Shown piece by piece: positions 31,382 through 39,969 of a stretch of 64,000 bases of DNA; position 1 is the stretch's first letter; every line of letters begins with the position of its first letter. The stretch spans positions 6,944,001-7,008,000 of the forward strand of contig OZ059899.1 in NCBI GenBank assembly GCA_964057225.1, in the 5' to 3' direction. This DNA comes from Auanema rhodensis. Taxonomy: Eukaryota; Animalia; Nematoda. The notes beneath the pieces are model-generated. The model saw nothing but the letters and a program-made list of their open reading frames with translations. It did not search any database and was not told the DNA's origin. The translations under genes and the position numbers were made by a program.

Positions 31382-34300
31382 ATGCTCTCCAAGGGTATGT
31401 TTAAATATAGTTTTCTTGTTCATTTCACAATAATACTGTATAAATATATGATAGTACTAACAAAATAGTGATATTAACCAGTTTTTGCAACTGTAAGTTG
31501 AATAAATTTTAAAAAATAGTTGAATATGGGTATATATCTCATCTAAACAATCGAATTGTCTTTTAGTAGACAAATAACCTTCTCAAAAATCGATCGCGTA
31601 TTTCATAAAGTTGTTCCGATCTATTTTCAATTTCAACTTTCAGATTTGTTCATTTGAAACCGTAATGGCCTCATTTGATTTTACATCAATATTTCATTTA
31701 AGTTTGACAAAAAAAATTGTTGTGCAGTGCTAAGAATACATAAATAAATGAATGCAAATACAACTTAATTGCAACTCATACCAATAGAATAGATAGTTTT
31801 ACTATATTATGAAGTTTTTTTAAAAAAAACTGTCTTTTATTGATAAGAAAAGATAATAAATCACCAAATCAAATAGTCCATTCTGTCACATATTTTGAAC
31901 AGCGAACATTCTGTTAAAATTATTTTTGGGATTGTAATGTGACAATTTATTATTGTTGATAGTTCAAACATTCAAAAAATATTTAGTAATTTGTTTTTTT
32001 TAATACTAATACTTCAGGATGGGTTAAGCTACAGATTGAACCTGTCGATGTAACGGTCGATAACGAGGATTCTCTTCTATTCTCTACCGTTCAATCTGTA
32101 GTCCCTGGAGCCCATGGTCTGTATTACCGTGAAAATGGTCAGAGAAAAGCTTTGGGGTGAATAATTAAAAGATTAATAGTGAAATAATCTAAGAATTTCA
32201 GTTTTGACACTAATACAGGACGTGTGTTTGCACCTCCATCTGGATGGCAAGCTCAAGATATATTTGTTCATCTTGGTAAATATATTATATTACTTTTACT
32301 TTTGAAACTATAATTTTTTATGAGTATTTTACATGATTAATTTATCTATTAAACATCAAACAACGTCTAATTTATTTTTAGCTCATGGTTCTAAACACGG
32401 CATGCACTATGCAGACTATTCAAAGGCAACAGCTCAATTTGAGAAAAACGTATCAGCTGTTCAGAAGCTTTTCGGTTTGACTTCAACATCATGTTGCAAG
32501 TAATTCTAATATATTTTATTTTCAGCTGGACTAGGATATGGTGGCATGACTGGTATGAAACCTATGACGCGAGCTGGTGAAAAGAAAACGAGAAGCCGCT
32601 CCAAAGTGAAGTCAGGATTTGAAGCTCAACCAGAGAATGTGCATATTAGTGAAGAGGTATTATATCAGTTATTTTGAAAATACAAAGATGTTAACCTTGT
32701 GAATGCAACCAGTTCTCGCTTTTAATCAGTTACAAATGCATTCAATTCAATTGTTATTCACATAGGTTAAACTTTGCATGAACATCTGATACATGAACCG
32801 ACAGATTATAATAGAAAATAATAAATAAAAGAAATTCAACTGATTTTATTTAATTTTTATTTGAAAAAAAAATATTATTTTTAAGAGCGACGTTGTTACA
32901 CAGTCTTCACCTGATATTGAAACAAAGACTGTTCATGAGCTCAAACATCAGTAAGTTGTTTTATGGATATTATGTCTGTAAGATTTCTAAACTAATTATT
33001 TTAAGAATTAAGGAACTTAAAAAGATAAACGAAAAGCTGAAACGAAAAAGTATTGATGAAGTGTAGGTTCCAATTTCCAATAGTAAGATATGTAACTGCG
33101 TTTAGGACATCAACTCAAATTAATCAAGAATCTGAATTAGAAAAGCTTAAACTACGTAATTCAGAATTGGAAACTAAATTAGCATCATTGTCAAATGTTA
33201 TTCAAAGCCAAGATGTATCAGCTAGTGAATCGTTAGTAGAAGTATAGATATATTCTTCATTAAAAATTCATTTACAGTTCTCCGCGTCGTGACAATGAAA
33301 GTGAGAAAGAAGACATGAAACTATTGTAAGTGTTAACATTAAACAAGACATTAATTTTTTTATTTGAAGGCAAAACAGGCTAATTGAAAAGGAAGAAGAG
33401 ATGAAGTTTATAATCTTTTCTAGTTATATGTCATAGTTTAACAAATTTCAGTAATCTTCACAGTGTTATTGAGGAACTAAGAGAAAAGAATAGCAATAAT
33501 GAAAAATCTCATAATGAAACACGTAGTTCATTAGATCAGCACATAGATTTGCTGAAGACTGCTAGAGACAAGTAAAAAAGCTTAGAAGAACACGATTGAT
33601 TGTTTTCTATACTTTAGAATTGCATATTTGGAGAATCAACTCAATGTTCTCTCATCAAACGATGTTGTAATTCCAGGTTTACTCAATTTCATATCGTCTG
33701 ATATAAATTTATTTGTAGTTCCTAAATGCCGTAGTCGAAATACTTCTGAGTCTCAAGATGATTCATCTTCAAAGGTACTATATTTGGAATATGTTAGGTT
33801 ATTATGAAAGAATTCCAGCATCGCTCATTAGAAGTTAAGCTTCAAATGGCTACTAATCAACTCAGAATGTGTGAATCTGATAAGCAGAAACTACAAGAAG
33901 CTAATTGGTTTGCTAATGAGCGTGTAAGCAAACTAGAAAAGGAAGTTGGATATCTCAAAGGCATGAACGATGAGATGAGGTTACGAATATCGTATTTTTC
34001 TGAGTTTTTGAACCATTGTTCAGATCACGTCTTAATGATTCAACTAGCGCGAAACTTCTAGCAGAGAGAGACCAAAGAATATCCGAATTAGCTGATCAAC
34101 GTGCAAAACTAGAATGGCGCTTGGGTGAATTGAATCAATGGTGGAATGATTCGAAGTGGAAGTAAGAAATTTTAAACAATAATTTCAATATTTGTTTGAC
34201 TGTAGAATTGGAGAATTAGAATCTAACCTTGCTCATCAACGATATTTATTGGAAACAGCTGGTAATAAAATTCAAAATCTAAACGATCAGTAAGTTATAA

Positions 34301-35495
34301 ACTATTATCTTCTTGAATAGTTTAACCAGAATTATCAAAACTAATAATGAATATAAAACTTGAAAAATATTTCAGACTCATTCTTGCACTTCGGTAAGAT
34401 TATAACTTTGTTTGATGTTTTGATTTTAACAATCAAAGTTGAAGTTATATAACCTATGAGTGTTATTTATAAAAAAAAGTTCTGTTGTCGTGTTCTAAAT
34501 AATTAAAATATTTTATGAAATACATTATTTAACTATTTTAGTGCTCCACAAGCACCAAGTTCCTCTATACCAAATTACGCTATTCGACAGGATACCAACG
34601 GACTTTGGCAACTAGCTAATGGATAGTAAGTTTTCAAAACTAAAAACTTAAGCTCAGGGTTTAATTTTCTAATCATTATCTATAAGGCGTAACTTATCAC
34701 AAACATCACTGCATGCACATCTTTGTTTCTTTCTCATTTTTATACCAGCCATTTAATTTGTGTCGTATCTTTTACGGGTGGAGAGAACATCATCAAAACG
34801 CTTTGAAAGTGAATCGATTCCTGCGGAATTGAAATCGAGAGATTGAATGCAATGCACAGAAATAATAACTTTGTTCAAGTCGTAAATTTTTTCTCACTTT
34901 CTCACAACTCAGCTTACTCAATGGTATATACCTTAGATATACTGCTAGGCTAAACAATTCAAATTAATACGCGAAAATAGTCCAAAATAATAGTCAAATA
35001 CATATTAAAAATAATAGGTTTAGTGTATTTTATCACTTTCATAAAGTATTTTCAGTTTTCCTGCAATTTCTCAACAACAAATTTTGCCAAACATTAACTC
35101 CTATCCAGTTTCCCTACCACATGTTTATGGTTATCAAAACGCCAGTTCAGTTGATACTAAACGTGTTACATTAGAAATAGAAAATGCTGAGCAAACTGAA
35201 GTTTTTGTTCTGGTTCGTGTTGTCTATATTAAAATTTTGGATTTTTTTTGTTTCAGTGCTCATTTATGAACTGGCAATGTGCTGTAAGATGTGATGCGCA
35301 GAATGCTGGCAAATCAGGAGTGATTATGAATCTTCCTCGTGGAAAGTTAGCAATCATATTTTAGCGAATCCAACATTTTGTACTTCCAGACATGAGTTCC
35401 GTTTTTTGAAAAATGGTTCTTGGACAACATCATCTCTTTATTCTTCAGTACCTAATGGTTTCGGAGGCTTCAATAATATGCTCATTGTTGAATAA
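31382..35495 (+). CDS. Protein with TDP-43 N-terminal-like domain, central coiled coil and C-terminal AMPK-beta-type glycogen-binding (CBM48) domain
   Basis: N-terminus GWVKLQIEPVDVTVDNEDSLLFSTVQSVVPGAHGLYYRENGQRKALGFDTNTGRVFAPPSGW; heptad-rich middle; C-terminus EVFVLCSFMNWQ...NLPRGKHEFRFLKNGSWTTSSLYSSVPNGFGGFNNMLIVE*. Confidence 0.8.
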
Positions 35496-35660
35496 TATTG
35501 AAATATTTATTGAAAAACCTTTAAAAGTATAACTGTGGGTTCAGAACTGGTTAAACTAGTTATTGATGTAGTGATAATATGTTAAAGTTTATAATATATC
35601 TAATCTATAAGTAGTACATATAATATAAAAAAGCATAATAGTAACAGAGCTAATATCGAA

Positions 35661-37515
35661 TTACTTATTCATGTATTGTTGAAATTTTGCAAGTTGAGAT
35701 TCATCAACAGTGGGTAGGAAATTGGATAATACAGACTCTATCAGACCAACCGTGACTGGATTACAGACAGCTTCAGATTTGCACAATGCCTTTTGTTCCT
35801 GAAAAATCTTTTAACGATTCAAAACTGAAATCGTCTAACTTTGAATCGTCGAAATTGAGCATATGCTACTTCGCTGGCAAATCTCCTAAGATCATCTCCA
35901 CTGAATCCTTCAGTTTTTGTAGAAAGCCACTCCAAACTAACGGCTGGAGATCGTGCTGTATGCTGAAAACAGAAAATATAAAAGTATGAAAAGTGCTGAA
36001 TAATAGTCACAGCTAATTTTTTCCGCAAAATAGCAACTCGGGCTGACAAACTTGGCAATCCAACATAAATTTTCTTCTCAAAACTGAAGAAATGAATAAA
36101 TTTTTTTTCTCTAAATAACAGTTATCAAACCGACGCAAGAAAGCTGGATCTAAGTCCCAAGGACAGTTTGTTGCACAAACTAACATAATGTTGCAAGTTT
36201 GTTGTAATCTTTGGATTTGAACTAGTAATTCAGTCTGAAATCGAGAAGTTAATACCAGAAATAGTGTGGAGGAATAACTTTTACTCTCCGATTTGAATCG
36301 TCTTCCGAAGAGGAGCGCATTCTACATAAGCTATCAACTTCATCAATGAATATTACGACAACTGAAATATAATAGTAATCAATTTTCATCATGATTGGAG
36401 CATACTTAAGCATTAGCTTAAGTGCCACAAAACATCACTATGATATGTATATTCGAGTAAAACCACACCTTTGTTTTGTTCAATGGCATGATCGAAAAGT
36501 TCTCGGATCAATTTCTCAGATTGTCCACTCCACGAAGATATTAGATCGGAAGATGATATCTGAGGAACAAAAAAAATTAACAATGAAAATGGGAACAAAA
36601 CCTGATAGAGAGTTGCTTTAATTTCACGAGCAGCAGCATGGCACAACGCTGTCTTACCTTTATCATACAGAACATTATACTGTAACACAATTGATATGTT
36701 TGATACCTGTTCCAGGTGGACCATAGAGTAAAACTGATTTCCATGGTTTCAAATCCGTTTTTGTGAACCATTCTGGATACAATATAGGGTCAACTAATGC
36801 TTCATTAAGTGCATTTTTCGCCTAAACGCAATTGTATCAAAGTATAAGGGAAAAAATAGAACTTCTGTAAGTCCTGCAATATCAGTTAATAAAGGTAAAG
36901 TTTCTAAATTTTTTACTATTGTATTTTCAATAGCTGCTCTGAAAATACACAAAAGTTTTAGTGTTATTAAAAAAATAGAACTTTCTAGCTTCAGAAAAAT
37001 CGTCGAATCTTTCTCTTGAATCAGTAGCGCTTATTTTATTCAATTGAGAATTACCACAGGAGCTACATTAACAAAAATAACAATAAAAATAGCGTCAGGG
37101 AAACTCACACCTCTTACATTCAGTCACACCTAGTGACATTTGGATAGTTGGGGAACCAGGTTCCATTTCATAATCCTGTTCTCCTAACACAATGAATAAA
37201 ATTAGAGTGCATATATTCCGAAATTACTAGCTATTTTATCCATCTCTAGTTTGGCAGCCGAGCTAAGCATATGACTAATAATTGATAAACTTTCAACAGC
37301 CCTTGTACCCTGCTCCTCTTTTGGGACTGAGTCAAGAATCTCAACAACAGAATCATAAGCCTGCAAAAAAAGGAACACTATTAACTACTATAACCACACA
37401 CCTGCTTTAAATCATCAACTGTGGAAGCTGGTCCCTTTTGCGCAATAGCTCGTAGAAGACTTCTGCATTTAATAAGTTTATCCTTACTTTTCTGAGGACA
37501 ATCTTGGCTTGACAT
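35661..37515 (-). CDS. Divergent VPS4/katanin-clade AAA+ ATPase with an N-terminal helical (MIT-like) region
   Basis: [103 protein letters not shown]. Confidence 0.85.
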
Positions 37516-38336: not shown

Positions 38337-39969
38337 TTAATAAAAGAACATTACCACCGAAAATATAGTTATGATAATATAAATTGAAGGTAACGAAACC
38401 AGTTGTCGTAAAGCGTATCCCGTGGTCCAGTCATCTGAAACTCAACGTTTTTCTATGGTAATATTTTGGTTAAAGAACCTAATTTTGCAGGTATTTTATA
38501 AATTATTATAGGATCTTGAATGTGTCGCCTTCTTACTTCTTTAATCAATAAATATATTATTCCTATTATGGATAAAAGAAGATGTAAAGACCAAAATATT
38601 ACTGAAAAACAAGTTATTCAATTAATTTTGCTGAAATCAAACCTTGGTTTGGTAAGGTGTAATAGTGTAGTGGAAGTACTTCAATCATATCTTGTAAGAA
38701 AATTCCAATAAATAGAATATTTATAAGGAATAAAGAAGCTGAATATGATTTCTCAATCGTAATTGATGCACATACGTTGAAAATTGCAAATAATATAGAT
38801 GGAAGAGTTACTGTAGTGTAGTAGTATGGTGCATTTCTCTGAAGTGTAACTGTGACAGCAATACTTTGTCTGAAATAATTATTTTATTCACATCAAACTT
38901 AGAAATGTTTTTACCTTCCACGTTGGCTTGTTACTTGAGAATCATTTAATCCCAAAATTTTGAAACTTCCACTAGTTGTACGATTTTCAACTTCATTTTC
39001 GCGAATAGTTATTGCTAAATACAGAAGTAAGTCATGTATTACTAAATCAGATATGGATACCAAATAATTCATCATTTCCCGAAACAGGTAAAGATTTGCC
39101 AATACGAATTTTATCTTCATTTGGCTTTAGAATAAAAATGCATTCATGTTTGTCATATGGATAATTAGTTAAATCTGTAAATTAAGTTTCATAATAAATT
39201 TTTTTAAAAAATGAACAAAATACCCAATGGACATCCAACTTTTATATAATAGGTTGGGCAAGTTATCAGCAAAGGTGGATCGTAATGTCTTACTTTCACT
39301 CGATCAGGGCGATGATCTACCATGTCAAATACTCCATTACCACTGCAAACATTATTTTCTTATATAATATAATCATATATAAGAAAAGTACCTCCCAACT
39401 ACATAAAGCTTTGGACTCCATATGTCGTATGGTCCGATCGCCATAAACTTTATGCCGCTATAGCTGTTAGGATCCCATTTTAATCTCTCATCTGTCCAAG
39501 TCTGTTAAGACAACGTATATAATTATCTTAAATGTTTTGCAAATTTAGTAATGTACCAAGCAAATAGTAAAAGAAGCATGAAACAACTGCTTATCCTCGT
39601 CTAGAAAGAAGTAAGGCATATGAGCAGGTACATAATCTAGAGTAACCTGAAAATTTTCAAAAATATTGTAGTTAATATTTTAACTTACCACATCGTTTTT
39701 TAAAGGCATGGTAGCTCCAAGTGAAAGAACTTTTTTCTCTAGTTCTCTCCGATACTCACCATCCGATTTTTCCTCTAAAATCATTATTGAATACAAAGTG
39801 AACAGAATAATTTCTAACCTTCTACTTCTATTCCTTCGGTATCATCTTGATAATCTTCAAAAAAAATATTTTTTAACGCAATTAAAAGGAAAATACCGTA
39901 ATCAAACTGTGCAGATATATATTCAGAAAATATCAGAATATAGAATAAGGTTAATGTGCGTATTTTCAT
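38337..39969 (-). CDS. Divergent Cys-loop ligand-gated ion channel subunit (orphan lgc type)
   Basis: Signal peptide MKIRTLTLFYILIFSEYISA; WTDERLKWDP; IWSPKL; Cys-loop CPLDLTNYPYDKHEC; pre-M1 LQRNAPYY; four hydrophobic segments. Confidence 0.8.

Follow-up and report, generated by a model that had tools for sequence, protein, structure and literature searches.

Does a single nematode gene join the N-terminal domain (NTD) of TDP-43 to a glycogen-binding module, and if so, what might its product do? The question is raised by a gene of Auanema rhodensis that lies in a window of 64,000 nucleotides (assembly GCA_964057225.1, contig OZ059899.1, positions 6,944,001 to 7,008,000 of the forward strand); all positions given here are counted from the first letter of that window. 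An earlier, sequence-only reading had placed at 31382-35495 a gene for a protein that starts with a TDP-43-type domain, continues as a coiled coil and ends with a CBM48 carbohydrate-binding domain, and had proposed that this protein polymerises and thereby clusters or tethers glycogen particles. We find that the predicted protein carries both terminal domains and likely binds glucan or glycogen, and that the TDP-43 interface through which it was proposed to polymerise differs in this nematode family.

The gene and its two terminal domains

The locus lies in AT-rich eukaryotic DNA with short introns. We built the gene model with the closest full-length homologue as guide, a 602-residue protein of Auanema sp. 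JU1783 (P0001) that is 57-91% identical to those window exons that align with it. All searches of the window were run per exon, and the model is based on splice sites, frame and homology. It occupies 31382-35495 on the plus strand, with an ATG at 31382 and a TAA that ends at 35495, exactly the bounds proposed earlier, and consists of 20 exons totalling 1836 nt (611 codons plus the stop). In an exon-by-exon check, all 19 introns had GT-AG borders and consistent phases, with lengths of 42-55 nt in 13 of them; every split codon was a sense codon, and no exon contained an in-frame stop. Judged by its sequence and its colinearity with P0001, this is a real, single nematode gene. The predicted protein runs from the NTD through a helix, a disordered basic/acidic stretch, about 300 residues of heptad-rich helix and a Pro/aromatic linker to the C-terminal CBM48.

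The likeness of the first ~75 residues to the TDP-43 NTD had been noticed by eye, and it is borne out by profile and structure searches. Exon 2 alone (searched as 32020-32154, 45 aa) matched the Pfam family TDP-43_N (PF18694) at 49.4 bits (E 4e-13), by itself passing the curated cut-off of 27.1 bits, and in the PDB it matched human TDP-43 NTD chains in an ungapped alignment over human residues 14-45 (E 0.006). Exon 3 alone continued the TDP-43_N profile to its end (positions 53-74, E 0.02), and the TDP-43-type NTD spans residues 6-75 of the window protein. Homologues scored 50-69 bits against the same profile. Structure predictions were made on P0001 with family alignments, this protein standing in for the window protein. 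In the AlphaFold2 (AF2) model of P0001, residues 10-75 have a predicted local distance difference test score (pLDDT) of ~90, and the eight best matches of the modelled NTD in the PDB were all TDP-43 NTDs, the top six with template modelling (TM) scores of 0.70-0.76 and root-mean-square deviations (rmsd) of 1.5-2.2 Å. Besides the Pfam family and fold, the window protein has in common with TDP-43 the acidic positions E14 and E21 and the PGA.GL.YR core. Consistent with the sequence-only reading, Pfam searches detected no RNA recognition motif (RRM) domain in any window exon searched or in any homologue. TDP-43 has RRMs and a Gly-rich tail, whereas the window protein has neither, indicating that it is not a TDP-43 orthologue.

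At the C-terminus, the carbohydrate-binding module is split over three short exons. The last of these alone (35391-35492) matched positions 47-80 of the Pfam family AMPK1_CBM (PF16561) at 18.5 bits (E 0.002), below the curated cut-off of 26.8 bits, and the other two (exons 18 and 19), which are too short to score, gave no Pfam match when searched singly. Exons 18, 19 and 20 are, however, colinear with the CBM of P0001 (58%, 69% and 83% identity, respectively), which passes the cut-off at 39.6 bits, and it is by this alignment that we assign the window module to the family. The anticipated Pfam match was thus obtained for the homologues, with scores of 39.6-58.9 bits, but for the window exon it stayed sub-threshold. 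Similarly, a phmmer search of the PDB with the last exon alone returned chance matches only (neonatal Fc receptor, E 0.34), and a longer fragment from a homologue recovered the match to AMPK beta. The C-terminal 85 residues of P0001 were modelled by AF2 with pLDDT ~90, and the modelled CBM matched those of AMPK beta1/beta2 (4yee, 1z0m, 1z0n) with TM scores of 0.88-0.91 and rmsd of 1.3-1.6 Å.

We mapped the glycogen-contact positions of AMPK beta onto the window protein through a HMMER alignment to AMPK beta2. Five positions of AMPK beta1 find their equivalents in W553 (W100), R581 (K126), W588 (W133), G602 (G147) and N605 (N150, which we take to contact the sugar). Among 21 family members, the positions of W100, W133 and N150 are invariant (21/21 each), that of K126 is Arg or Lys in all 21, and that of G147 is Gly in 20. 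Glycogen binding by AMPK beta1 is lost on substitution W100G or K126Q and reduced by W133L or G147R (PMC6274970). Since the contact positions are conserved across three nematode clades (III, IV and V), the CBM48 of the window protein likely binds glucan or glycogen; the glycogen-binding step of the earlier proposal gains support from the conservation of the very residues at which substitutions in AMPK beta1 impair or eliminate binding. The motifs in which that reading had recognised the carbohydrate-binding residues, SFxNW, HEFRF...G.W and NN, are present in the window protein and invariant in the family.

The open reading frame (ORF) ends four residues past the NN motif, at the last strand of the domain. 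There is no AMPK-beta C-terminal alpha/gamma-binding domain, as the ORF does not extend beyond the module and no Pfam match to such a domain was found in the homologues. Hence, although the window protein and AMPK beta have the Pfam family, the fold and the glycogen-contact residues of the CBM in common, the lack of the alpha/gamma-binding region indicates that the window protein is not an AMPK subunit. Exon 19 also encodes a pair of cysteines, NWxCxxxC (35257-35290), of which the second is invariant and the first near-invariant in the family; AMPK beta is without the pair.

Relatives in other nematodes

An exhaustive homologue search with exon 2 as the query yielded 24 matches, the best of them P0001, which is 91% identical over this exon. 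Every named match was a chromadorean nematode. Rhabditina were represented by Caenorhabditis, strongylids, Pristionchus, Diploscapter, Mesorhabditis and Heterorhabditis, Tylenchina by Strongyloides, Steinernema, Rhabditophanes and Globodera, and Spirurina by Toxocara, Ascaris, Syphacia, Thelazia, Acanthocheilonema and Wuchereria. A profile search with the family alignment detected no non-nematode relative, and a feature search with P0001 returned scores no higher than chance (0.84 at most). One protein with nine weak exon 2 matches (P0008, 1024 aa, with low-complexity repeats) has no Pfam domain and was taken as spurious. Both Pfam cut-offs were passed by six full-length homologues and by a protein of Pristionchus mayeri (P0060). 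Two intron-free contigs of ~2 kb (L001 and L002) each encode both domains in a continuous ORF (572 and 578 codons, respectively). This speaks against a split into two genes in the relatives and favours the single-gene reading. The earlier expectation that homologues exist in other nematodes is thereby confirmed, with orthologues across Chromadorea carrying both domains.

The orthologue in C. elegans is F46H5.7 (NP_741829/30 and NP_001360046; UniProt Q8MQ42, H2L048 and H2L049), which databases name "AMPK1_CBM domain-containing protein" or "uncharacterized protein". The traits of the F46H5.7 group are found, in colinear order, in the window gene: the NTD, the post-NTD motifs, the EKEEEINNLH and KLEWRLGEL..WW blocks, and the C-terminal CBM. 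F46H5.7 has the same domain order, the same colinear blocks, the same end at the C-terminal CBM and the same position of a 6-aa insert, and is 45% identical to P0001 over 99% of its length; an NPF motif of the C. elegans group has no counterpart in the window protein. On these features of sequence and order, we conclude that the window gene is the orthologue of F46H5.7.

The 6-aa insert corresponds in position to a candidate alternative micro-exon of 18 nt in intron 16 (34376-34393, +), bordered by tttcag and gtaaga, which keeps the frame and would add (Q)LILAL(R) where the coiled coil ends. At the same junction, inserts are present in C. elegans isoform c (NP_001360046, P0052; LIQEVR), C. angaria (LIQEVR), C. 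auriculariae (LIEEVS) and Ostertagia (LTTALR). A cassette exon of F46H5.7 is included in touch neurons only, in a MEC-8-dependent manner (PMC8934639); 34376-34393 may be its equivalent, the text of that paper naming no exon. Two other papers mention F46H5.7, one as a protein that interacts with the ITSN-1 EH domain in a two-hybrid assay (PMC3570524) and one in a table of NXF-1 co-immunoprecipitation (PMC6762213). These three were all the published mentions that we found, each of them incidental, and literature searches by UniProt accessions, or by both Pfam names together, returned nothing relevant. We found no functional description of F46H5.7 in the literature searched, and the sequence-only reading, which knew of none, holds to that extent.

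Proposed self-assembly and possible function of the predicted protein

In the crystal structure of TDP-43, an acidic tail (E14, E17 and E21) contacts a basic head (R52, R55, S48 and N45), and the interface includes the salt bridges R52-E17 and R55-E21 (PMC5491494). Assembly is disrupted by E17R, Y4R or S48E, each singly (PMC5830921). We mapped this interface onto the family using an ungapped alignment and column counts for 39 NTD sequences. The acidic tail is kept: the E14 position is Glu in all 39 sequences, the E17 position is Glu, Gln, Asp or Asn, and the E21 position is Asp or Glu in all 39. The head is altered, with Leu at the R52 position in 37/39 sequences, Asp or Asn (Asp being the typical replacement) at the R55 position in 33/39, and Gln or Glu at the S48 position. 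Two to three residues earlier, at the positions of Q49 and C50, there is a basic pair (Arg or Lys in 36/39 and 35/39, respectively). By these column counts, the head-to-tail interface described for TDP-43 is not conserved in the family. Because R52 and R55 are replaced, TDP-43-like polymerisation cannot be assumed, and the earlier claim of head-to-tail polymerisation "as in TDP-43" lacks support as stated. With the acidic tail kept and the basic pair shifted, complementary charges might conceivably still meet in a shifted register, and self-assembly through such a modified interface is possible. Since the described interface is not conserved, we treat self-assembly as no more than possible and take seriously the alternative that the NTD docks a partner.

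The explanation that we favour, and to which we give about an even chance of being right, is that the window protein acts as a multivalent adaptor sitting on glycogen particles, where it would cluster them or bring something to them. The CBM48 would bind glycogen, all residues known to matter in AMPK beta1 being kept. The coiled coil would make the protein at least dimeric, and so place at least two glycogen-binding modules at one end and at least two NTDs at the other. The NTDs would then either assemble the dimers further, by an interface differing in detail from that of TDP-43, or dock a partner; the net effect in either case would be clustering or recruitment on the particle.

Non-catalytic adaptors for alpha-glucans are known from other organisms. 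The plant proteins PTST1, PTST2 and PTST3 (PROTEIN TARGETING TO STARCH) carry partners, starch synthases, to alpha-glucan, and like the window protein they are non-catalytic and carry a CBM48 at the C-terminus, behind a coiled coil. Unlike the window protein, they are plastid proteins and are without a TDP-43-type domain. We found no sequence relation to PTST outside the CBM48, and no plant protein was among the matches of the homologue search. The analogy drawn in the sequence-only reading holds for the architecture of coiled coil plus CBM48, and we take it not to reflect common descent. In mammals, STBD1 (genethonin-1) is a non-catalytic glycogen-binding adaptor; it combines a CBM20 with a membrane anchor and an Atg8-interacting motif, whereas the window family has a CBM48, and by eye we saw no canonical Atg8-interacting motif ([WFY]xx[LIV]) conserved in the disordered linkers of the family.

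Apart from the replacement of the two arginines in most of the family, several points weigh against a multivalent glycogen adaptor as we propose it. Glycogen binding is read from conserved residues, and the structural evidence is that of the Auanema homologue, not of the window protein itself. Within the gene model, frame and splice sites are all that supports exon 9, and some donor choices have no basis other than frame and homology. In the literature, we came across no localisation, phenotype or partner of F46H5.7 that would tie it to glycogen, and its sole reported physical link is the two-hybrid match to the ITSN-1 EH domain.

The replacement of both TDP-43 interface arginines would also fit a targeting adaptor that is a coiled-coil dimer and nothing larger, in which the NTD or the coiled-coil blocks bind a partner and the CBM48 brings that partner to glycogen. 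Candidate partners would be a glycogen enzyme or another protein with a TDP-43-type NTD, such as TDP-1; plant PTST proteins bring starch synthases to starch in the same manner. The kept glycogen-binding residues agree with this arrangement, as does the conservation of EKEEEINNLH and KLEWRLGELxQWWNDxKWKxGELE, which goes well beyond what a coiled coil needs generically. However, no partner is known, and the most conserved parts of the NTD are the acidic face and the PGAHGLYYR block, which homotypic contact would fit equally; in TDP-43, the NMR (nuclear magnetic resonance) shifts of the equivalent block are concentration-dependent. We hold a purely dimeric targeting adaptor to be possible, though only tentatively so. 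It is unlikely, in our estimate, that glycogen plays no part at all and that the CBM48 fold serves as a protein-binding module in a coiled-coil trafficking or cytoskeleton factor. The two-hybrid match to the ITSN-1 EH domain (PMC3570524), weak coiled-coil similarities to HOOK, Rab11-FIP3 and TMF, and touch-neuron-specific splicing in C. elegans speak for such a factor, but the conservation of all carbohydrate-contact positions in clades III, IV and V would be hard to explain without a glucan ligand. Moreover, the coiled-coil matches all fall below cut-off and are scattered over unrelated families, and the NPF motif, which could explain the ITSN-1 EH match, occurs in C. elegans-group sequences (to which, by eye, its conservation is confined) and is absent from the window protein.

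Both the preferred glycogen adaptor and these alternatives presuppose one protein. We consider it highly improbable that an NTD-only gene and a gene for the coiled coil and CBM were merged by eye, even though an unspliced exon 4 meets a stop at 32501 and would give a short NTD-only product, and many database entries are NTD-only fragments. These short entries derive from short contigs or partial predictions, the colinear single-protein architecture recurs in more than 20 nematode species, the intron-free contigs hold both domains in one ORF, and the 19 window introns are all GT-AG and consistent in phase. A broader notion is that the TDP-43-type NTD is a general nematode assembly module, reused on several cargo domains, and that such proteins co-assemble with one another or with TDP-1 into mixed filaments. 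We think this quite improbable; if true, it would mean that glycogen stores are physically linked to RNA-protein assemblies.

Exon structure, neighbouring genes and significance

All exons lie on the plus strand. Exon 1 (31382-31394) encodes MLSK and the first base of Gly5 from the start codon on, is followed by the donor gtatgt, and gives the same MLSKGW start as in P0001. Exon 2 (32018-32156) encodes the first part of the TDP-43_N domain (residues 6-50), and exon 3 (32202-32275), colinear with P0001, the second part with the GW motif (residues 52-75). The conserved post-NTD extension AHG..H..YSKA..FEKNVSAVQKL is encoded by exon 4 (32382-32474) and is helical in the model of the homologue, where a helix at residues 88-108 of P0001 precedes a disordered stretch. 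We chose the exon 4 donor, after QKLF, by homology, the unspliced frame meeting the stop at 32501; a donor at 32499/32500 was rejected, since it would leave an intron of 26 nt and the frame runs into a stop. Were the chosen donor left unused (32475-32503, +), nine more codons would be read before that stop, yielding a putative NTD-only product of ~115 aa. Exon 5 (32526-32656) encodes a Gly-rich/basic stretch and then a conserved acidic motif, KSGFEAQPENVHISEE, all predicted to be disordered.

The coiled coil extends over the following exons; in P0001, the heptad signal exceeds that of 95% of shuffles over approximately residues 160-460. Searched against Pfam, the middle region gave only sub-threshold matches, to many unrelated coiled-coil families (HOOK, tropomyosin, crescentin and others). 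The coiled coil starts in exon 6 (32886-32950), which has GT-AG borders, a suitable phase and no stop, and which was placed in the order of P0001 by eye, there being no tblastn alignment. Exon 7 (33006-33062) gave a weak tblastn match. Exon 8 (33106-33231) is 69% identical to residues 188-223 of P0001, and its donor, gttagt, is the sole one that keeps the frame; several others were rejected because they break it. The least certain exon is exon 9 (33278-33325), an acidic linker within the coiled-coil region at a place that is variable in the family. The conserved EKEEE(I/M)NNLH block begins in exon 10 (33370-33405), which was placed by the family alignment. Exon 11 (33452-33571), with NLHSVIEELREK..., is 57% identical to residues 251-296 of P0001, and exon 12 (33618-33676), with IAYLENQLN, was located by tblastn of P0001; both encode coiled coil. 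A Ser-rich break, PKCRSRNTSESQDDSSSK, is encoded by exon 13 (33719-33774). The 42-nt intron before it, an in-frame stretch whose skipping rests on homology, is backed by the alignment to P0001.

Coiled coil resumes in exon 14 (33819-33979), 81% identical to residues 331-387 of P0001; an acceptor at 33798 was rejected, as it would make an intron of 23 nt. Exon 15 (34024-34161) encodes the most conserved coiled-coil block, KLEWRLGELNQWWNDSKW, which is 81% identical to P0001 and near-invariant in the family, and exon 16 (34206-34289) the end of the coiled coil, IGELESNLAHQRYLLETAGNKIQNLND, 82% identical to P0001. Within the coiled coil there appear to be two copies of a ~36-residue unit, (W)xLGE..(W)L..AKxK(V)..LE.QL (33452-33676 and 34024-34289). 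The Trp is kept in both copies in strongylids, and hhalign of the two blocks gave E 1e-4 with a probability of 53%, lending modest support to an internal duplication of this unit. Pfam scans matched no catalytic family. By eye, no signal peptide or membrane segment was apparent, and the PP1-binding RVxF motif was not conserved in the family.

Exon 17 (34542-34625) encodes a linker with a conserved G.W.LAN motif and is 60% identical to residues 459-483 of P0001. In exon 18 (35056-35212), a Pro-/aromatic-rich linker is followed by the first CBM48 strands (from ~35162, RVTLEIEN...EVFVL), and we picked the donor such that the junction of EVFVL with CSFMNW preserves the spacing of AMPK beta. The middle of the CBM48, with SFMNW and Trp553, is encoded by exon 19 (35257-35345), and its end by exon 20 (35390-35495), which contains Arg581, Trp588, Gly602 and Asn605 and the stop codon.

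Downstream, the gene is bounded by a convergent, multi-exon AAA-ATPase gene at ~35660-37400 (-), the last coding exon of which lies ~170 nt from the stop codon; this neighbour was recognised by Pfam AAA and AAA_lid_3 matches on exon pieces and by the Walker A motif GPPGTG. Further on, at ~38600-39500 (-), there are exon pieces of a Cys-loop ligand-gated ion channel, with a Pfam Neur_chan_LBD match on 39376-39498 (E 2e-7).

The family is already present in public databases, where both domain labels are assigned automatically, so that the window adds one orthologue and not a new family. We found no characterised protein that joins a TDP-43-type NTD with a glycogen-binding module. We class the window protein with the PTST-like, non-catalytic adaptors for glucans, and we found no description of an animal counterpart of the plant PTST-type protein, that is, of a non-catalytic protein in which coiled coil and CBM48 are combined. 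The TDP-43 NTD has been studied almost solely within TDP-43, in which polymerisation through this domain regulates splicing activity and counteracts pathological aggregation. The functional statements made here are drawn from conservation, and the function is directly testable in C. elegans. As it carries the TDP-43 NTD fold on a protein that lacks an RNA-binding part, and as C. elegans belongs to the same lineage, the family is a genetically tractable natural case for the domain's own role.

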